From the sequence record PV654397.1: a stretch of DNA of 64,000 nucleotides. One strand, 5' to 3'. The position numbers and the translations under genes are program-made. The notes under the pieces were generated by a model, which saw nothing but the letters and a program-made list of their open reading frames with translations, made no database searches and was not told the origin of the DNA. This document shows positions 3,535 through 21,842 of this stretch, in pieces. Each line of letters starts with the position of its first letter. Position 1 is the first letter of the stretch.

Positions 3535-3654
3535 GATTTTATTCCTTATTGCCAGGGAGAACCGTTCCCCCTCTCGATATAAAACATTATACTTGATTCT
3601 AAGTACAATGCAAGTACTTTTTAAAAAATAGTTTTCAGTACTGAATACTTATAT

Positions 3655-3705
3655 AATAGATACACTTCCGCACCCTATGGGTCAGTGAGTTATCTCTCAA
3701 TGGAT
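3655..3705 (-). ncRNA. CCC-N3-GGGUGC motif RNA candidate, copy 2
   Basis: TGAG-AGATAA-CTCA hairpin then ACCCATAGGGTGC...GTGTATCT behind a fused terminator/promoter (3708-3746). Confidence 0.5.
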
Positions 3706-6856: not shown

Positions 6857-6937
6857 ATTATACTTGATTCTAAGTACAATGCAAGTACTTTTTTAAAAAT
6901 AGTTTTCAGTACTTGATAGTACTAGCCACCAGCAAAC

Positions 6938-6985
6938 AATAGATACATTTATGCACCCTGTGGGCTGATTTGTTTCTATGCGTAT
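6938..6985 (-). ncRNA. CCC-N3-GGGUGC motif RNA candidate, copy 3
   Basis: GCCCACAGGGTGC...ATGTATCT behind a fused terminator/promoter (6986-7023). Confidence 0.45.
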
Positions 6986-9051: not shown

Positions 9052-9294
9052 TATTTTAACCTCATTATAAAAATACTATAGTACTGTAATGCTACAATAA
9101 TACTACTAGTGCTAATCTTATTCAAACCACATGATACTACATATCCCCCAGCATTACCACGGATAGTAACGCCTTCGTATTGTCTATATAAATTCAACTG
9201 CGTTTATTGCCTTTGATCAAGAATTGATCAGAATTATACGCCTTATGCTAAATTGATCCAGTACTTTTTTTGATCATTTATTGATCGATATTAT

Positions 9295-9348
9295 ATAGTT
9301 ACATTTGTGCACCCTATGGGTTAGTGACGTTCTCGTCTTGATGTAAGT
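9295..9348 (-). ncRNA. CCC-N3-GGGUGC motif RNA candidate, copy 4
   Basis: GACG-AGAA-CGTC hairpin then ACCCATAGGGTGC behind TTGACA-17-CATAAT (9349-9377); no ORF. Confidence 0.5.
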
Positions 9349-10830: not shown

Positions 10831-10949
10831 GATTCGTTTCCTTATTACCAGGGGAAACCGTTTCCCCTTTCGATGTAAAACATTATACGCTTATTGAGAT
10901 AGTTTGCAAGTACTTTTTAAAAATAGTTTTCAGTACTCAAACATTATAT

Positions 10950-11000
10950 AATAGATACACTTATGCACCCTGTGGGCTAGTGAGCTATCTCTCAATGAAT
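10950..11000 (-). ncRNA. CCC-N3-GGGUGC motif RNA candidate, copy 5
   Basis: TGAG-AGATAG-CTCA hairpin then GCCCACAGGGTGC...GTGTATCT behind a fused terminator/promoter (11003-11042). Confidence 0.5.
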
Positions 11001-14040: not shown

Positions 14041-14315
14041 CTTTATATCCTCAGTTAGTTAAGGTGTCTTGCCTTGATGTAATTAATTATACGCTAATCT
14101 CTTAATCGTGCAAGTACTTTTTATTACTTTTTGCAAAATACTTTAAACGCTCTCAATCGCATTACAACGACCTTAACGCCACCAGCTAGGGCAATGCATC
14201 AGATAATCAGTTTAATGCGTTAGAATCGTTTCTAGGCGGTGCTGGTGGCCTGGTAAACGATAAACACAAAAAAGCCCACCGTTTAAGGTGGGCTAGTGAT
14301 TCAGTACTTTAATTG

Positions 14316-15667: not shown

Positions 15668-15904
15668 TTATGATTTTTTATAAAACATTTCAGCCGTGAT
15701 ATTTTTACCCGTTGGTTGTACTTTATCCAGAATTTTTTGATGCCCAGGCCGTCCAAATGAATATGATCCGTAAACCGTAAACCAGTAGTTACCCTCAGTG
15801 TTTACATGTACAGCACAATAGGGTACACCCCGCGATTCATCACTAGTAAAGTGTACTACCGTTCCCGTTACATTCGCAGACGTTGATTTGATTTGTTCAA
15901 GCAT
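15668..15904 (-). CDS. hypothetical early protein (78 aa)
   Basis: AAGGA SD, promoter and hairpin. Confidence 0.7.
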   Translation of the reverse strand: MLEQIKSTSANVTGTVVHFTSDESRGVPYCAVHVNTEGNYWFTVYGSYSFGRPGHQKILDKVQPTGKNITAEMFYKKS

Positions 15905-16013
15905 TTTCTTATTCCTTAGTTACCAGGGGAACCGCTCCCCCTATGCAAAACATTATACGCGTTTAAAAACTAATTGCAAGTATTTTAATAAAAAGTATTT
16001 GAAAAAATAGTTG

Positions 16014-16042
16014 TTGACAAGTGCATCCAGTACTGGCATAAT
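16014..16042 (+). promoter_or_regulatory. plus-strand sigma70 promoter antisense to the early genes
   Basis: TTGACA-17-CATAAT with AGTACT 9 bp after the -35. Confidence 0.75.
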
Positions 16043-16047
16043 TACTA

Positions 16048-16145
16048 CATCAAGACGAAACAGTCACTAACCCACCGGGTGCCGAGATCCGTCTATTAAA
16101 TGATTCAGTACTGAAAAAGTAACGGGGAGTTATTATCTCCCCGCG
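16048..16145 (+). ncRNA. CCC-N3-GGGUGC motif RNA candidate, copy 6
   Basis: GAC-GAAACA-GTC hairpin, ACCCACCGGGTGC, ends at hairpin CGGGGAG-TTATTAT-CTCCCCG; no ORF. Confidence 0.55.
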
Positions 16146-16148
16146 TTG

Positions 16149-16370
16149 TTATTTTGTAAGGTATAAACAGAAGTCACCTTTATTTGCTACGCCGCCAGTG
16201 TAACGCGAGGAATAGTTAGAAACGTCCTGGACTTCTGCTATTACCAGGGTATCATCATTCAATTCGTCGCAGAAGCAAACGGCTGGATCTTGTACGCCGA
16301 TTTTGTCAGCATGTTCCCGCATAGATTTAACCAGTGCTTCCAGTTGGGAAAGAGTAGTGATATTAGCCAT
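16149..16370 (-). CDS. hypothetical early protein (MANITTLS...)
   Basis: Start trimmed; GAGGA SD and hairpin. Confidence 0.7.
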   Translation of the reverse strand: MANITTLSQLEALVKSMREHADKIGVQDPAVCFCDELNDDTLVIAEVQDVSNYSSRYTGGVANKGDFCLYLTK

Positions 16371-16454
16371 TGTATTTTCCTCATTACCAGGGAGAACCAT
16401 TTCTCCCTTTGATGTAAACCATTATACAGTACTGAAAACTAATTGCAAGTACTT

Positions 16455-16643
16455 TTAATTAAATTCCATAAAATCATTTTCAACGTGCACAACAATCTGA
16501 TTATTTTTAAAGGACGCAGAAAACTCTATACAATCATAAACCGCTTTTTCTGTTACCAGACTATGAGCACCAATCGGATTAATTGGGGATTGAATTGTTT
16601 CAATCTCGTTACCTTGTTCATTAACGATTAAAATATTAAACAT
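16455..16643 (-). CDS. hypothetical early protein (62 aa)
   Basis: AGGAG SD; promoter leader duplicated at 16870-16910. Confidence 0.7.
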   Translation of the reverse strand: MFNILIVNEQGNEIETIQSPINPIGAHSLVTEKAVYDCIEFSASFKNNQIVVHVENDFMEFN

Positions 16644-16682
16644 TGCCGTTACTCCTGGATAGTGTTAACTCGATATAAAGTA

Positions 16683-16865
16683 TTATACGCCTTTATTGCT
16701 TAGTGTCCAGTGATCACGCATCATACGCCCCGCACGATCCCAGCTAGTAGGCATGGGTATGCCTTGCAATTCGTTAGGGGAGATCTCGACCTCGATCCCT
16801 ACATCAATAACAGTCATTCCAGCTTTCGCAGCTTGCTCGCGGATAACCTCAGATAATGTTGTCAT
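16683..16865 (-). CDS. hypothetical early protein (60 aa)
   Basis: AGGAG SD and own promoter. Confidence 0.65.
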   Translation of the reverse strand: MTTLSEVIREQAAKAGMTVIDVGIEVEISPNELQGIPMPTSWDRAGRMMRDHWTLSNKGV

Positions 16866-16939
16866 GATTAAAGCTCCTGGATAGTGTTAACTCGATATAA
16901 AGTATTATACAGTACTGAAAACTAATTGCAAGTACTTTT

Positions 16940-17200
16940 TCAATATTGTTTGTCGTCGTCTTCCTCGATGAATTGACCGACGAAATGATCTACTTTCGCT
17001 TTGAGGCTTTTATAATCTTCTTCTACTTCCTTTAAACGTTCCTGGTAGTATTCCAGTGCTTGAATATACGCCGCCTCAGCAGTTTTTGCACGCATAGCTA
17101 AATTCATTCCACGCGTTTCATCAAATAGCCAATAACCATCGGTGCAATGACTGATAGATAATGATTTACTTAGTGCTGTATAGCTAATTACTTTACTCAT
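16940..17200 (-). CDS. hypothetical phage protein with C-terminal coiled coil (86 aa)
   Basis: GAGGG SD; YWLFDETRGMNLAMRAKT motif typical of phage early proteins (recollection, not searched). Confidence 0.75.
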   Translation of the reverse strand: MSKVISYTALSKSLSISHCTDGYWLFDETRGMNLAMRAKTAEAAYIQALEYYQERLKEVEEDYKSLKAKVDHFVGQFIEEDDDKQY

Positions 17201-17257
17201 TAGATAACCCTCAGTAAAGGCGGGAACTATTACCCGCCATTATCTCAGTACTGAATA

Positions 17258-17497
17258 TTACATTCCAACCATTGCAGCACGGATCGCAGTAGTGCTATAC
17301 TTAAAGCCGTCCGGCGTTGTAGTAGTACCGTTGGCTTTTAATCTGCGGTACATACATTCCGCAGCAATATCTTTAGTTCTACTTTGTGCGATGCAACTTT
17401 GAGCAAGCCGATACAATGACTCACCGTTATTAATCCAAAGGCTTACATTCCAATGAGTTTTGTTTTTGTGACCGTTGTAAGTTTTAGTACTAGCCAT
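17258..17497 (-). CDS. early protein, paralog of 19300-19539
   Basis: Shared GHKNKTHWNVSLWINN and TPDGFKYSTTAIRAAMVGM. Confidence 0.8.
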   Translation of the reverse strand: MASTKTYNGHKNKTHWNVSLWINNGESLYRLAQSCIAQSRTKDIAAECMYRRLKANGTTTTPDGFKYSTTAIRAAMVGM

Positions 17498-17587
17498 TTT
17501 TAAATCCTCGTTTGAGCGGGGAACCACTCCCCGCCTCGATATAAAGTATTATACGCTTTTAAACTTAGTTTGCAAGTACTTTTTAAA

Positions 17588-18199
17588 TTAATATTCGATT
17601 GATTCCACTACGCCATCAATAACATTGAATTGATACTCGTTACCCTCAATCAGTGCCGTAATGTTTTCAGTAGTGAATTGATCCTCATATGCATTCTCTA
17701 AATCACGGTACAACTTGCGGGACAATTCACGAATAGTTTCAGTGAGTAGTTCCTCAAGCTCATTAACTAACGTTTCTTGTTTTGCGGTTAAATCAGTGTA
17801 AGCCGATTCAATGTACCCGCTTACCGTGTTTTCGTGTGCGTAGCGAGAGTGTGAACGTTCTACACTCATTGCCAAATCATCTTCATTCAACAAGTGACGG
17901 ATAGAACGATATTTCGTTAACGCTTTAATCTTGCGTAAAAACTTCACTGCGTCCACGCTGTCAGTACTGATTGATGCACCGTCACCCTGGGACCAAAAAC
18001 CGCTGAATTGTATTTCAGCTTCATTAATGCCATATTCCGGTAGTACTGTTTCTTTATAGTATTCAATTTCACTTTCAGAAAAATAATTGTCGTTTGAGTT
18101 TTTTTCACGTTCCCGAACCAGTTCGATAGCTGACGTTTGTTGTTCTGCGTTCAATTCAGAAAAAGCCATAACATAAGTAGTAGTAGTGATAGTTTTCAT
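17588..18199 (-). CDS. FSGFWSQGDG-motif protein (family seen on plasmids and phages, often auto-annotated as an antitoxin)
   Basis: TTTYVMAFSELNAEQQ N-terminus and IQFSGFWSQGDGAS core; family assignment from memory. Confidence 0.6.
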   Translation of the reverse strand: MKTITTTTYVMAFSELNAEQQTSAIELVREREKNSNDNYFSESEIEYYKETVLPEYGINEAEIQFSGFWSQGDGASISTDSVDAVKFLRKIKALTKYRSIRHLLNEDDLAMSVERSHSRYAHENTVSGYIESAYTDLTAKQETLVNELEELLTETIRELSRKLYRDLENAYEDQFTTENITALIEGNEYQFNVIDGVVESIEY

Positions 18200-18261
18200 T
18201 TTGTAACCCTCATTCAGTAGTTGATGTAAGTATTATACGCTTTTAAAAACATTTGTCAAAC

Positions 18262-18346
18262 TATTTTATCAGGGGAGTTTTTCGTGTGCCTTACTCCTGG
18301 GCTACTTAACGGGAAGTTACTTATTTCGTTCCCCGTCCTGATGTAA
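18262..18346 (-). ncRNA. two-hairpin RNA candidate with AAG-N4-ACGAAAA loop, copy B
   Basis: Near-identical to 6772-6856, with differences in the N4 loop segment and one stem. Confidence 0.55.
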
Positions 18347-18423
18347 AACATTATACGCCTTTAAACATAGTTTGCAAGTACTTTTTAAAAATAGTTTTCA
18401 GTACTGAATATTAAAAAAAAGTA

Positions 18424-18596
18424 TTGACAGCATTATCAAGTACTGGCATAATATACCCCATGACAACAGCTAACCCACCGGGTGCACAATTGTAACTATA
18501 CTAAACTAATTTTGCTATAGATACACTCCCGCACCCTATGGGCTACGGCTTATCTGCCAATGAATACATTATGCCAGTACTGACAAAATAAGTCAA
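18424..18596. promoter_or_regulatory. convergent promoter pair, each followed by a CCC-N3-GGGTGC motif (copies 7 and 8), motifs 45 bp apart
   Basis: Plus TTGACA-17-CATAAT 18424-18452, motif 18473-18485; minus TTGACT-17-CATAAT 18596-18568, motif 18543-18531. Confidence 0.65.
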
Positions 18597-18626
18597 TACC
18601 GGCAATTGTAAAGATTTGTAAACTGC

Positions 18627-18857
18627 TTATACTGCAATCGCGTCCAGGCTGTAATAATAATAAGTGCCGTATTGGTGTACTTTATTACCTTTTATTTCAG
18701 TACTGAATGAATCCGAACGATTTGCATATGATGTTAATTTAAAGTACTTTGATTTGCTGATACGTTGCCATACACCACAGATCCGCTGTAAGTAAGTAGT
18801 TTTATTCGTGGTAGTATCTTTTACGGTTTTAACTTCAGTCATATACATATTAGTCAT
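18627..18857 (-). CDS. hypothetical early protein (76 aa)
   Basis: GGAG SD, promoter and hairpin. Confidence 0.7.
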   Translation of the reverse strand: MTNMYMTEVKTVKDTTTNKTTYLQRICGVWQRISKSKYFKLTSYANRSDSFSTEIKGNKVHQYGTYYYYSLDAIAV

Positions 18858-18944
18858 TTTTATTACTCCAGGTTATAGGCGGGAAGTGTTCCCGCTCTCG
18901 ATGTAAAACATTATACGCCATTAAACATAGTTTGCAAGTACTTT

Positions 18945-19211
18945 TTATTCAAGTACTGCAATCTTTTTTGTACGGTACACGGTCACGCGGTTGCCCTTTC
19001 GGTCGAGCTTTATTTCTACCACTCGACGCGATACACTATCGGGACTTTTTAAGGCCGCTAACCAGTACTGTAATGATCTGGCGGTACTACGCTTTACAAT
19101 GGCCCAACGTTTACCACGTTCCGATTGTACGCCCATATCTTTAAACGTTGCCCCGTCCTGGCGTGCGGCGATCCGAGCTTGTTCACGCGTCGCAAAATAC
19201 TTAATATTCAT
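18945..19211 (-). CDS. early protein, paralog of 5259-5654
   Basis: Start trimmed to MNIKYFATRE; shared motifs. Confidence 0.75.
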   Translation of the reverse strand: MNIKYFATREQARIAARQDGATFKDMGVQSERGKRWAIVKRSTARSLQYWLAALKSPDSVSRRVVEIKLDRKGNRVTVYRTKKIAVLE

Positions 19212-19299
19212 GCTGTTGCCCTTATCGTTGGTGTATGAATAAAACACTATTATAAAGTACTATCCCCGTGCAATAGTACTTTAAATAAATTCTATTCTA

Positions 19300-19539
19300 T
19301 TACATTCCAACCATCGCCGCACGGATCGCAGTAGTGCTATATTTGAATCCGTCCGGTGTTTTATCTTGTCCAGTCTGTTCTAAAAATAACATCATATGAC
19401 GGGCCGCATCATTGCGATTAGTGTTGTCGTTAATAAAATCCAGGGCCAACCGATACAATCCCTCATCGTTATTAATCCACAGGCTTACATTCCAATGAGT
19501 TTTGTTTTTGTGACCTAAGAACATTTTTGATTTAGCCAT
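19300..19539 (-). CDS. early protein, paralog of 17258-17497
   Basis: Start trimmed to MAKSKMF; shared motifs. Confidence 0.8.
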   Translation of the reverse strand: MAKSKMFLGHKNKTHWNVSLWINNDEGLYRLALDFINDNTNRNDAARHMMLFLEQTGQDKTPDGFKYSTTAIRAAMVGM

Positions 19540-19632
19540 TTTTTTAATCCTCTTATATAGTGGGGAACTATTCCCCACCTGATGTAAAACATTATACGCT
19601 TTTAAACATAGTTTGCAAGTACTTTATTAAAC

Positions 19633-19995
19633 TTATTTGTAAATTTTGCCACTGTCAGCCCATACCAGGAAACGAGGCATATTATCCCATGCATCTTGTT
19701 TTAAGTTTAAGCCGTGCAATTCCTCAGTTGTTGCCATCCCTGGTACTGGCTTACTACACACCGCGAAATTTTCGCCCATATACTGATAAACCATCGTCAA
19801 ATCATTTGAGATCATTATATGGATCATTGAATCCAGCATCAAAGTAGCGGCGTATTGTTCACGCTTAAGCGGCAACATTGCAATAAGTTCCCGATAAGCT
19901 GCAATGTGAATTTTTACCGTTTCAGCCGGAAGACCTTTCATCTCATCGCGGAAGTTTACCAGGTTAAGCATGATTTTATTGATTTGAGTCGCCAT
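19633..19995 (-). CDS. hypothetical early protein (MATQINKI...), first ORF of the early block
   Basis: Start trimmed; SD, leader hairpin and promoter. Confidence 0.7.
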   Translation of the reverse strand: MATQINKIMLNLVNFRDEMKGLPAETVKIHIAAYRELIAMLPLKREQYAATLMLDSMIHIMISNDLTMVYQYMGENFAVCSKPVPGMATTEELHGLNLKQDAWDNMPRFLVWADSGKIYK

Positions 19996-20305
19996 CGTTT
20001 TAATCTCTCTTAATGTGTAGCGGGAAGTGTTCCCGCTCTCGATGTAAAACATTATACGCTTTTATCAGTACGGTGCAAGTACTTTCTACAAATACTTTTA
20101 AAATAGTTTTCTTTCTATATAGGAGTACTATTATTCAGTACTGAATCAATCCACCAAATCATCCCTATACCCCGTAAAACGGCCTCAGACGCATTCTAAC
20201 GCATTAATACACCTAAGCTATACATTTGCACCACTCCCAACAATCCAGGGCGTTACGGGCCGTTTAAACGCGTTAAATTATTTTCAATTATTTTGTTTTT
20301 AGGTA

Positions 20306-20499
20306 TTGACTTGATCCTGAAAAAGCGTATAATTACTACATAGACGCGAGAAAGCGGAAACCCCAGAGGGTGCGGAATTACGCCCAAAATTCAAGATATA
20401 AAAAAAGGATACACTCCCGCACCCTAGCAGGTAAACGCACTTTCTCAGTACTGAAATATAGTACCATAGTCCGGCCCAGGATAGCAAGCAAATTAATTA
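20306..20499. promoter_or_regulatory. second convergent promoter pair with CCC-N3-GGGTGC motifs (copies 9 and 10), 45 bp apart
   Basis: Plus TTGACT-16-TATAAT 20306-20333, motif ends 20373; minus TTGCTA-18-TACTAT, degenerate motif begins 20419. Confidence 0.55.
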
Positions 20500-20521
20500 A
20501 AACTTTTTTGCTTCCAGGGTA

Positions 20522-20615
20522 TTGCTTTATTTTTTCAGTACTGTATAATAGTTCCATCAAGTCGAGAAAGACTCAAGCCCACCGGGTGCATAGTTACGCC
20601 CAAAATTCAGTACTG
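20522..20615 (+). ncRNA. promoter plus CCC-N3-GGGUGC motif RNA candidate, copy 11
   Basis: TTGCTT-16-TATAAT, GTC-GAGAAA-GAC hairpin, GCCCACCGGGTGC; no ORF. Confidence 0.5.
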
Positions 20616-20646
20616 AAAAAATTTTTAAAAATATCCGTCCAGGTCG

Positions 20647-20675
20647 TTGACATTGCCCCCAGTTTATAAGATAAT
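20647..20675 (+). promoter_or_regulatory. sigma70-type promoter firing into the ORF-free zone
   Basis: TTGACA-17-GATAAT. Confidence 0.6.
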
Positions 20676-20771
20676 GATTCCAGATTCAGAAAAATCTAAC
20701 TCCAGATACTGCGGGGAAACTATCCCCACGCGGTAGGGGAACTATTGGAAAAACAAAATAAAATTTTGATT

Positions 20772-20940
20772 TAGCCGTCTATACTTCCAGACGTGTAACC
20801 ATCTAGCCGTTTAGCCATCCAGCCATCCAGAAATCTAGCCGTTTAGCCGTCTAGATGGATAGCCATCTTTACTTCCAGACTTCTGGAGGGCTAGACATAT
20901 CTACGCCCAAAATCCATCCAGGGTAACTACACCCAAAATC
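20772..20940. repeat. cluster of AGCC(G/A)T x7, TACTTCCAGAC x2 and TAC(G/A)CCCAAAATC x2
   Basis: Read directly; partly 8-bp tandem periodicity. Confidence 0.75.
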
Positions 20941-21269
20941 CGTCAGTACTATACCATAGATCTATCTTTTGAAAGGGAGTATTCAGTACTGCCATCATAG
21001 CCCTCACTATGTTACCCTAGGAGGATGAAGACTATCATGTAGTACTGAATACTGTTAGAGGGAATCCACCAGCTTGTGCTGGTGGCATAATGCTTTAGAT
21101 TAAAATCAGTACTGATACCATTCTGTTAATATCAGTACTGTTATTACGATTTTCATATGAGGTTCAAAAAGATGTACCACCACAGGAGGAACTATCTTTT
21201 CTGTACTGTCTCACGACAGGAGGTAGAGTAAATGAATTGTTCGCAGCAACTCATCACCCTATGTAGAAC

Positions 21270-21297
21270 ATTATACAGTACTGAATCATAAAGTCAA
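21270..21297 (-). promoter_or_regulatory. sigma70-type promoter with no convincing downstream ORF
   Basis: TTGACT ttatgattc AGTACT g TATAAT. Confidence 0.65.
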
Positions 21298-21572
21298 TAA
21301 CTTTCTTTCATCTTTCAGTACTGATATTCTTGAGAACTACCCGACTACAAACATCATTATATCCCACAAATCATAAACGTCCCAACGTAAATTTCAACTT
21401 TCGAAGATCCAACTTTTATTTCATAGGTACTCCAAAATTTTTAGGATCGAGATTTAGGATGGAGTACTAACCAACTTTTTGCTGGAGCCTCAAGGGGTAA
21501 TTGAATTTTACCCCGAAGGGTAAAGGGGTAATTGAAATTAAGGTGAAAGTAATAATTCAGTACTAATCATTG

Positions 21573-21842
21573 CGTGATTACTTTTGATTACATTTGATGT
21601 AATTTGCAAAATGGAAAAGGAGCTTGGAAACTACAAAGTACGGCAGACTTCCTCTGCCTACTTAGTGGCATATCGACACCTTCAGTACTGAATACTTTTG
21701 GGGCAGTACTGAATCCTTCCCTAGCATTCTTGAGTAATCTTGTCTATAATAATCAGTACTGAATCATATATAATCATTCTGTGATTCTACGGTGCTCATA
21801 TAAATGTTTATATATGATTACTTATGACTACATATGATTACG
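21573..21842. repeat. two triplets of 10-bp phased TGATTAC-like repeats (21573-21602 and 21813-21842)
   Basis: CGTGATTACT TTTGATTACA TTTGATGTAA; TATGATTACT TATGACTACA TATGATTACG. Confidence 0.6.

Follow-up and report, generated by a model that had tools for sequence, protein, structure and literature searches.

Tail-to-tail pairs of a predicted small structured RNA unit, set 45 bp apart, in the terminal repeat of RaK2-like jumbo phages

The stretch of DNA analysed, referred to here as the window, comprises 64,000 nucleotides of sequence record PV654397.1 and is the left end of Escherichia phage WPEC5, a 381-kb jumbo phage of the genus Asteriusvirus. Positions 1-21662 constitute the left direct terminal repeat (DTR). 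Every motif hit described below recurs at +359664 in the 381326-bp record, and the digest-verified first bases of phage fEgEco12 match the window at about position 21662 on the minus strand.

Two sites near the outer end of the DTR each carry a plus and a minus promoter that face each other. In pair 1 the plus promoter, TTGACA-17-CATAAT with an extended -10 box, occupies 18424-18452 and is followed by GGGTGC at 18480-18485; the complementary GCACCC lies at 18531-18536 and the minus promoter, with TG before the -10 box, at 18596-18568. In pair 2 the plus promoter, TTGACT-16-TATAAT, is at 20306-20333, GGGTGC at 20368-20373, GCACCC at 20419-20424 and the minus promoter, TTGCTA-N18-TACTAT, at 20499-20458. 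A promoter scan scores the sigma-70-type hexamers of pair 1 at 11 (plus) and 10 (minus) of 12 and those of the pair 2 plus promoter at 11 of 12. The fourth is weaker, with 8 of 12, and is not listed by the scan, although it is invariant in eight Asteriusvirus genomes. Three of the four motifs read CCC-N3-GGGTGC, the fourth CCTGCTA-GGGTGC. The gaps between the facing motifs, 18486-18530 and 20374-20418, are both 45 bp with different sequences and A/T-rich centres. The observation made in the first-pass annotation, of two convergent promoter pairs with GGGTGC motifs exactly 45 bp apart, is therefore correct. The distances between the -10 boxes differ, 115 against 124 bp, so that the fixed quantity is the motif spacing and not the promoter spacing.

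The arms are not special to the pairs, a point that the first-pass annotation missed, as it did the confinement of the unit to the DTR and its RNA-type variation, both described below. GGGTGC is the core of a repeated unit, CCNNNNGGGTGC occurring 10 times in the window against 0.32 expected, and 11 units can be recognized in which the promoter hexamers and the start context align. Four of these form the pairs. The outward unit of pair 1 (18460-18497, plus strand) is of a short type with no clear 5′ hairpin (P1); it contains ACCC-ACC-GGGU and a 3′ arm of the second hairpin (P3) at 18493-18497, and gives a covariance-model hit at 18451-18503 of 24.5 bits. The inward unit of pair 1 (18519-18561, minus strand) has P1 as TGGC/GCCG with the loop AGAUAA, followed by CCCATA, GGGTGC (18536-18531) and P3, and gives a hit at 18513-18564 of 41.4 bits. 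The two P3-coding segments are separated by a central, A/T-rich 21 bp (18498-18518). The outward unit of pair 2 (20340-20385, plus strand) has P1 as CGC/GCG with the loop GAGAAA, then CCCCAGA, GGGTGC and P3 as GGGUG/CGCCC, and is followed by AAAATTCA. It is the most widely conserved unit across genera (hit 20340-20391, 51.9 bits), with matches at 92-96% identity in Salmonella, Klebsiella and Erwinia phages, SE_PL and Kaldavass among them, whose flanks do not match. The inward unit of pair 2 (20407-20452, minus strand) has AGTACT in its P1 and the core CCTGCTA-GGGTGC (20424-20419), and falls below the covariance-model threshold. The central 21 bp of this pair (20386-20406), again A/T-rich, supplies a U7 run on the minus strand directly after P3, and a terminator-like site is flagged at 20425-20406.

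The remaining seven units occur singly. Two face outward on the plus strand. The first, with its promoter, spans 20523-20607 (47.1 bits), with GGGTGC at 20584-20589 and AAAATTC then AGTACTG after P3; the second spans 16049-16150 (51.7 bits), with GGGTGC at 16077-16082 and, 28 nt after P3, a GC hairpin predicted to act as a bidirectional terminator. Five face inward on the minus strand, at 10947-10998, directly upstream of an early-gene promoter module, at 9291-9342, at 6935-6979, a short type with an A-rich leader instead of P1, at 3652-3703, and at 1397-1441, also of the short type and about 1.4 kb from the inner DTR boundary. Lone outward units are followed by a GC hairpin at 27-29 nt in four genera, whilst most lone inward units are followed by AGTACT and the next promoter.

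The variation among units is strand-specific and of the wobble type, which is typical of a folded RNA. An alignment of 45 units with MAFFT followed by RNAalifold recovered only the CCC/GGG pairing and missed P1 because of register shifts, and we relied instead on a covariance model and a per-sequence hairpin table. For P1 at least 20 different complementary stems surround an A-rich loop of 4-8 nt, mostly 6-7, all four pairs change on both sides, and the mean folding energy is -2.7 against -0.9 kcal/mol for shuffled sequences. For P3, GGGUG-N8-YRYCY, 95.9% of cells are paired and the only changes are wobble-compatible transitions (U-A/U-G 36:28, G-U/G-C 39:25 and 40:22), whereas structures slid by 1-3 columns give 31-63%. 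Folds of single sequences are weak, with z from about 0 to -1.7. A possible 4-bp hairpin ACCC/GGGU (P2), with which P3 may alternate, shows compensatory changes in two units, CUC/GAG and CGC/GCG, and one counter-example; the pair count depends on whether the loop is taken as 3 or 4 nt and gives no formal covariation.

Whole-record covariance-model searches of ten RaK2-like phages of 347-381 kb find 10-13 units per genome, all within about 24 kb of the record start or inside the annotated repeat. The units are thus confined to the roughly 20-kb DTR and none lies in the other roughly 330 kb. The unit has no counterpart in Rfam, with no match at the gathering score in the whole window and only chance-level hits (E above 2), none on a unit, at permissive thresholds in 15900-21700. 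ARAGORN detects no tRNA or tmRNA gene in the window, and a blastn search with a unit against 5,426 E. coli genomes gave no match, so at that sensitivity it is not a copy or mimic of a host sequence. Papers on CBB, phAPEC6, fEgEco12 and Sharanji describe the repeats and some promoters but not this unit, and the Matilda preprint concerns another lineage. A CRISPR repeat mimic, ToxI-like antitoxin repeats, a CsrA or SD-like decoy, an N4-type DNA hairpin promoter and the T7 class II stop signal were also considered and dropped for lack of any match.

Each genome has 2-3 convergent pairs. The gap is 45 bp in both pairs of eight other Asteriusvirus genomes of 84-100% identity and in pairs of Kaldavass, BF, pEa_SNUABM_12, XbC2, CBB, GAP32 and uncultivated jumbo contigs, giving at least 18 non-identical pairs from Asteriusvirus, Mimasvirus, Eneladusvirus and metagenomic contigs. 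Free variation of the spacing at orthologous loci had been named in advance as the outcome that would count against a DNA-level role, and it was not seen: the only other values are 56, 63 and 67 bp, plus 42 bp in one unverified record. A loose pair pattern run on IMG/VR mostly returned unrelated G+C-rich contigs; a symmetric pattern was effective, but its hits at 42-44, 51-54 and 61 bp are G+C-rich repeats of another kind and were set aside. The well-supported longer centres, of 56, 63 and 67 bp, each carry an inserted Fur-box-like palindrome. Judged against the 19-bp consensus GATAATGATAATCATTATC, the centres of SE_PL, Muenster, BF and L073/L115/L213 hold the core AATGATAATCATT or variants of one or two bases, a resemblance of sequence only, and the WPEC5 window has no such site within 3 mismatches. 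The central 21 bp are 76-100% A+T and poorly conserved.

The interpretation offered in the first-pass annotation is partly supported. Its core inference, that spacing is conserved without conservation of sequence, holds and extends to three named genera and metagenomic contigs. Of the three options it proposed, a transcription-primed bidirectional origin is the least supported, and a protein-bridged recombination or packaging site and a source of short dsRNA are not excluded.

What then might a pair do? Our preferred reading, which we hold only tentatively, is that each arm is one member of a multi-copy family of short transcription units, which host sigma-70 RNA polymerase would transcribe as soon as the terminal repeat enters the cell. 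The RNA, of about 45-60 nt, would start at a conserved C-A site, for the four paired units at a predicted A at about 18460, 18561, 20340 and 20452, and have P1, or an unpaired stretch, presenting A-rich purines, then a conserved single-stranded CUAACCC and P3. In this view inward-facing copies sit just upstream of early-gene promoters, whereas outward-facing copies need a stop and get either the downstream GC hairpin or a facing partner. Two elongating polymerases cannot pass each other and the inward unit usually carries P3 plus a U-run, so each unit of a pair would end the transcript of the other across the 21-bp centre. The pair would yield two short RNAs and act as a two-way transcription barrier about 1 kb and 3-4 kb from the genome end, with a third pair near the inner repeat boundary in Mimasvirus. 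The sequence comparisons establish the family, its restriction to the repeat, the RNA-type variation and the exact spacing; expression, promoter activity, the RNA 3′ ends, mutual termination and the steric reason for 45 bp, be it two head-on polymerases or a bound protein where a palindrome lengthens the centre, are inferences. There are difficulties. A hairpin plus U-run is present in the inward unit of pair 2 and, with U5-U6, in several Mimasvirus inward units, but most P3 hairpins lack a real U-run, the first 10 nt after P3 holding 2-6 T, and intrinsic termination is doubtful for many units. The outward RNA of pair 2 has an A-rich tail. Moreover, collision does not by itself require spacing exact to the base pair, so that the strongest feature of the finding is only loosely explained.

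Two alternatives are about equally unlikely. The first is a DNA site at which a phage or host protein binds the two CCC-N3-GGGTGC arms at a fixed distance, to serve recombination between the repeat copies, as Cre-loxP does for P1, processing or duplication of the repeat during packaging, or anchoring of the end. An exact spacer length with free spacer sequence is typical of recombination sites, the terminus-proximal pair lies 0.95-1.35 kb from the physical end in all genera, a palindrome of protein-binding type fills the longer centres, and centres differ between pairs of one genome but are identical between the two repeat copies. However, the arms are shared with lone units and their variation is strand-specific and by transitions only, while the two compensatory changes in P2 keep a hairpin but would change the contact bases of a protein. 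A Pfam search of eight neighbouring ORFs found only DUF7249, twice, with no recombination or replication function, and centre-to-centre distances of 51, 62, 69 and 73 bp do not keep one helical phase. The second is an antisense pair, in which the RNAs overlap as dsRNA or a read-through transcript folds into a long hairpin, as a substrate for RNase III or a means of mutual control. The pair is an imperfect palindrome, its promoters face each other at about 110-125 bp, and a 129-nt read-through RNA folds at -32 kcal/mol on the plus strand (z -3.7) and -48 kcal/mol on the minus strand (z -5.0). Against this, duplex or hairpin formation does not need a fixed 45-nt spacer, and the terminator-like hairpin of the inward unit would end it before overlap.

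An origin at which the facing RNAs stay hybridized as R-loops and prime leading strands outward from the A/T-rich centre, as at T4 oriF/oriG or ColE1, is disfavoured though not excluded. RaK2-like phages carry a T4-type replisome (PMC5259590), the promoters would act early, the G-rich motif and A/T-rich centre fit, the exact spacing suggests a DNA-level device, and in CBB and GAP32 pairs lie near both boundaries of the repeat. Yet the RNA appears selected to pair with itself rather than to stay hybridized to DNA, including through G-U wobble, which has no meaning in an RNA-DNA hybrid, and the unit occurs 7-9 times unpaired. By the twin-domain model convergent transcription overwinds the intervening DNA, which opposes melting; no initiator or DnaA-box signal was seen, the neighbouring genes being small unknowns, and inserts of 11-22 bp are tolerated. 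Least likely is that the spacing has no function; the module would have been inherited or duplicated as a block, and 45 bp would persist only because 24 of the 45 bp belong to the two P3 hairpins and most of the rest to conserved 3′ tails. In favour of this, 24 of the 45 bp are P3 loop plus arm, AAAATTCA follows P3 of one subtype and a U-rich run the other, the centres keep residual similarity (0.53 against 0.42 for random) and XbC2 and Kaldavass share one centre. Against it, the centres are otherwise diverged across genera yet no pair among the verified records differs from 45 by 1-10 bp, and within Asteriusvirus about half of the 13 free central positions vary with no indel.

Comparisons with other systems are instructive. 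The face-to-face promoters of temperate phages, pR/pL of coliphage 186 and Pant/Psar with sar RNA in P22, fire at each other over a short distance, as the predicted promoters of a pair would, with short transcripts and interference by collision expected; here both arms are paralogues of a 10-13-copy structured RNA family in the terminal repeat of a lytic jumbo phage, an internal motif is fixed in spacing across genera, and no switch genes flank them. T4 oriF/oriG and ColE1 RNA II/RNA I place a promoter-driven RNA, here a predicted one, next to an A/T-rich stretch, and ColE1 has a structured RNA with an antisense partner, but they have a single promoter plus unwinding element, whereas these units are convergent, with many lone copies and variation that indicates a self-folded RNA. 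Lambda nut boxB and HK022 put resemble the units in a short stem-loop with a purine-rich loop directly downstream of an early promoter, in having two stem-loops and, as inferred for the units, in requiring no phage protein for synthesis. There is, however, no boxA here and no sequence similarity, the loop is 6-8 nt rather than a GNRA-like pentaloop, and four of the 11 units point away from the genes and run into predicted terminators. Bidirectional intrinsic terminators share an A/T-rich centre flanked by hairpin-coding segments, one strand giving a hairpin plus U-run, but a pair has two separate weak hairpins 21 bp apart rather than one GC-rich hairpin, and the other strand usually has an A-rich tail. 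The loxP-type sites in the terminal redundancy of P1 have inverted arms about a spacer of fixed length and free sequence, but of 6-8 bp rather than 45 bp, whereas the arms here are predicted transcribed units with promoters and no recombinase was identified among the ORFs scanned. The pre-early region of T5 is a long direct terminal repeat packed with small genes under strong host-type promoters, with a non-coding, repeat-rich stretch at one end; no comparable RNA unit family or convergent pairs are known there.

A more speculative possibility, which we regard as unlikely but cannot rule out, is that the exact geometry matters in itself. Two host polymerases, or their RNAs, would be held head-on at a fixed distance to create a bidirectional RNA-primed start of replication or a mark for duplicating or processing the 21-kb repeat, with the multi-copy RNA as the shared part of the machinery. 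The pairs lie about 1 kb inside the outer end in every genus examined and, in Mimasvirus, about 1.6 kb inside the inner boundary.

RaK2-like jumbo phages (350-380 kb) are being collected for therapy, and their published genome papers describe no small RNAs or regulatory modules in the repeat. The convergent module, exact to the base pair, is a rare case where comparative data alone point to a steric mechanism. A structured RNA made, as inferred here, from about ten strong host-type promoters in the first DNA to be expressed is likely to be a major early product, one that would be doubled in dose by the repeat and whose conserved core gives a direct handle for pull-downs and knock-downs.

The region 18300-20700 is 100% identical to Escherichia phage WPEC5 (PV654397.1, 381,326 bp) at the same coordinates and 84-98% identical to about 35 other jumbo coliphages of genus Asteriusvirus. 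Every motif hit in the first 21 kb recurs 359,664 bp later in the record, and positions 1-21662 are therefore the left copy of a direct terminal repeat (DTR). For the close relative fEgEco12, PhageTerm and restriction digests verified a 20,993-bp repeat and the physical ends (PMC13070987), and its first bases match the window at about 21662 on the minus strand. CBB, Sharanji, Muenster and fENko-Kae01 also have repeats of about 20-22 kb. In the window the genes of the repeat run on the minus strand, away from the 21662 boundary, and in the right-hand copy that boundary is the physical end of the genome. The GC skew changes sign at the repeat boundary, about 22 kb, and again near 44 kb, which may reflect a change of gene strand.

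The last 1.0 kb before the terminus (20640-21662) is non-coding. It holds iteron-like repeats (GGATGGCT, ACGGCTAAA/ACGGCTAGA), extra copies of TACGCCCAAAAT, further outward and inward promoters (20647-20675 plus, 21297-21270 minus) and, at the very end, a terminal hairpin GGCAGAGGAAGTCTGCC. The E. coli Chi sequence GCTGGTGG occurs 19 times in the window against 0.67 expected (for example at 21066-21085, 1361-1368 and 14179-14248) and is strand-biased, with 10 of the 12 copies in the repeat on the minus strand. An inverted Chi pair (CCACCAGC-acaa-GCTGGTGG) lies about 0.6 kb from the physical end and the same pair is present in fEgEco12 and SE_PL, which suggests protection of the linear ends from RecBCD. 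The DNA around two small early genes, at 18627-18857 and 19300-19539 (query positions 325-619 and 996-1304 of the search with region 18300-20700), is 81-89% identical to rV5-like phages of about 150 kb (Phapecoctavirus and relatives), suggesting recent exchange of early genes. The segments 19300-19539 and 17258-17497 both belong to DUF7249. Each early gene has its own TTGCAA-N16-TATAAT promoter, followed by a conserved 5′-leader hairpin of the type GGGAA...TTCCC before the ribosome site (18860-18905, 19556-19590 and 20020-20050, minus strand).

The first-pass annotation described two convergent promoter pairs with facing GGGTGC motifs exactly 45 bp apart, and this observation is correct. The plus promoters lie at 18424-18452 and 20306-20333 and the minus promoter of pair 1 at 18596-18568; these score 10-11 of 12 in a consensus scan. 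The minus promoter of pair 2, ending at 20499, scores only 8 of 12 but is invariant in eight genomes. The hexamers lie at 18480-18485, 18531-18536, 20368-20373 and 20419-20424, and both gaps are 45 bp with different, A/T-rich sequence. Each promoter had been described as followed by CCC-N3-GGGTGC; three of the motifs do have this form, whilst the fourth is CCTGCTA-GGGTGC. The motif occurs 10 times in the window against 0.32 expected.

Listing every GGGTGC with its context reveals 11 copies of one unit, seven on the minus strand and four on the plus strand. Each unit has a sigma-70-type promoter, a conserved C-A start context about 7 nt after the -10 box, 20-34 nt of leader, the motif and about 12 more conserved bases. 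We extracted and tabulated 45 units from four genera. The leader holds a hairpin (P1) of 3-6 bp, mostly 3-4 bp, around an A-rich loop such as AGAUAA, GAGAAA, GCGAAA or AGAACAA. At least 20 different complementary stems occur and the mean folding energy is -2.7 kcal/mol, as opposed to -0.9 kcal/mol for shuffled leaders. A short subtype has an unpaired A-rich stretch instead. After (C)UAACCC-N3, GGGUG pairs with YRYCY across an 8-nt loop to form a second hairpin (P3). On 64 distinct sequences aligned to a covariance model 95.9% of cells pair, and the only changes are U-A/U-G (36:28) and G-U/G-C (39:25, 40:22, 48:8, 56:5). Structures slid by 1-3 columns reach only 31-63%. Variation by transitions only, on one strand, is what a G-U-tolerant RNA helix gives and is not what a protein-binding site or an RNA-DNA hybrid gives. 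A possible further helix, ACCC/GGGU (P2), would exclude P3; two units support it with compensatory changes (CUC/GAG and CGC/GCG) and one unit contradicts it. Searches found no Rfam family, tRNA or host sequence that matches the unit.

Ten whole phage records of 347-381 kb (WPEC5, fEgEco12, SE_PL, Kaldavass, Muenster, BF, pEa_SNUABM_12, XbC2, CBB and GAP32) were searched with the covariance model. The search gives 10-13 units per genome, counted once per repeat copy. All lie in the terminal-repeat region and none lies in the remaining 330 kb or so. The outward unit of pair 2 is the best conserved, matching at 92-96% identity in Salmonella, Klebsiella and Erwinia phages, and its core (query 37-71) matches in Serratia phage BF, although the flanks of these phages do not match. 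It sits 0.95-1.35 kb from the physical end in every record that starts at the terminus. Units also exchange parts. In the ph0011 and TH47 records (alignment columns 64-90; L033:4416-4470 and L034:4433-4487, respectively) the orthologue of this unit carries the P1/core cassette of another paralogue (GCC-GGACACAA-GGC, CCCACA) with the pairing kept. The promoter and the flank further downstream are unchanged, and TH47 also keeps the WPEC5 P3, indicating modular exchange between paralogous units.

Every lone outward unit, antisense to the genes, in WPEC5, SE_PL, Kaldavass and Muenster, except that at 20584 near the terminus, has AGTACT about 10 nt after P3 (27 nt in Kaldavass), and a GC hairpin follows 27-29 nt after P3. 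That hairpin is also the terminator of the facing gene, so these units look like discrete genes for RNAs of about 110 nt. Most lone inward units are followed by the next early-gene promoter module, CAGTACTG, an A/T stretch, then AGTACTTGCAA...TATAAT, with no terminator between. In the window AGTACT occurs 273 times against 22 expected, and CAGTACTG 61 times against 1.1, mostly within 1-28000 (for example at 18377-18406 and 20124-20143). Two copies flank the A/T-rich stretch upstream of the early-gene promoters (CAGTACTG-N16-AGTACTTGCAA) and one lies in the spacer of several unit promoters. This looks like an operator or promoter element. Paired units have no GC hairpin; the partner takes its place.

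Free variation of the spacing in related genomes would have counted against the first-pass interpretation, and it was not found. Both pairs are 45 bp apart in WPEC3, EJP2, A4, ph0011, TH47 and fEgEco12, as is pair 1 in 121Q. About half of the 13 free central positions differ among these genomes, with no indel. The one deviation is 42 bp in an UNVERIFIED record, CMSTMSU. Outside the genus the gap is again exactly 45 bp in two pairs of Kaldavass, one pair each of BF and pEa_SNUABM_12, two pairs of XbC2, three pairs of CBB, three pairs of GAP32 and five pairs on two uncultivated contigs of 355 and 358 kb. The 45 bp divide into 12 bp of P3 loop and arm on each side and a 21-bp centre, which is 76-100% A+T and shows only weak similarity between loci, 0.53 against 0.42 for random A/T-rich 21-mers. 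The only recurrent elements are AAAATTC after P3 of one unit subtype and a U-rich run after the other.

The remaining spacings are 56 bp in SE_PL, Muenster and contig L213; 63 bp in SE_PL (with a near-identical pair on contig L073), BF (with pEa_SNUABM_12) and contig L115; and 67 bp in Muenster. In each of these the extra 11-22 bp is a palindrome resembling the Fur box, with core AATGATAATCATT. Such palindromes (records L024, 20049-20111 and 20320-20440; L027, 1287-1342 and 2398-2464; L051, 1008-1070) fill the centres of the longer convergent pairs in SE_PL, Muenster and BF and also cluster near the SE_PL terminus, but none occurs in the WPEC5 window. Apart from the unverified record, no pair differs from 45 by 1-10 bp. 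The length is therefore constrained, as the first-pass annotation had guessed. The two WPEC5 pairs differ by 9 bp in the distance between their -10 boxes, and the constraint thus sits on the transcribed motifs, not on the promoters.

What the analysis establishes is a new, probably RNA-level, multi-copy unit confined to the repeat, the provision of a putative stop for its outward copies, and pairs of fixed geometry. Our preferred reading, held tentatively, is that a pair is two such genes placed tail to tail so that each ends the other; transcription of the units and mutual termination are inferred from sequence alone. The inward unit often has P3 plus a U-run, flagged as terminator-like at 20425-20406, whereas the outward unit has an A-rich tail and would be stopped by collision with the partner's polymerase. 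Two head-on elongation complexes need roughly 35-40 bp between their active sites. A 45-bp gap would then stall both complexes a few bases past GGGUGC, on a G+C-rich hybrid with P1 just outside the exit channel, although we caution that this steric account is likewise inference and explains the exact spacing only loosely. A protein bound to the inserted palindrome could take up the extra 11-22 bp in the longer pairs.

The first-pass annotation had inferred a DNA-level machine, with a transcription-primed bidirectional origin, a protein-bridged recombination or packaging site, or a source of short dsRNA as options; this interpretation is supported only in part, in that the spacing is conserved without the sequence. 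A protein-bridged site, for recombination or for processing the repeat, fits the fixed spacer, the constant distance from the end and the pair near the inner boundary in CBB and GAP32. The arms, however, behave like RNA, and no recombinase was found next to the pairs. It remains possible but unlikely, as does formation of dsRNA or a long hairpin, which is physically plausible since read-through RNAs fold at z -3.7 and -5.0 but which needs no fixed length. An R-loop origin, somewhat less likely again, fits the T4-type replisome and the exact geometry, yet conflicts with the self-folding signature, the many lone units and the overwinding expected between convergent promoters, and no initiator gene lies nearby. 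Pure inheritance of the spacing is unlikely given the saturated centres without small indels.

The genome papers on CBB, phAPEC6, fEgEco12 and Sharanji do not mention the unit or the pairs. The nearest known systems are the face-to-face promoters with small RNAs of 186 and P22, the R-loop origins of T4 and ColE1, the nut and put leader RNAs, and fixed-spacer recombination sites, none of which shares the defining set of features. If our preferred reading is correct, the result of each pair would be two short RNAs and a two-way block to read-through near the genome end.
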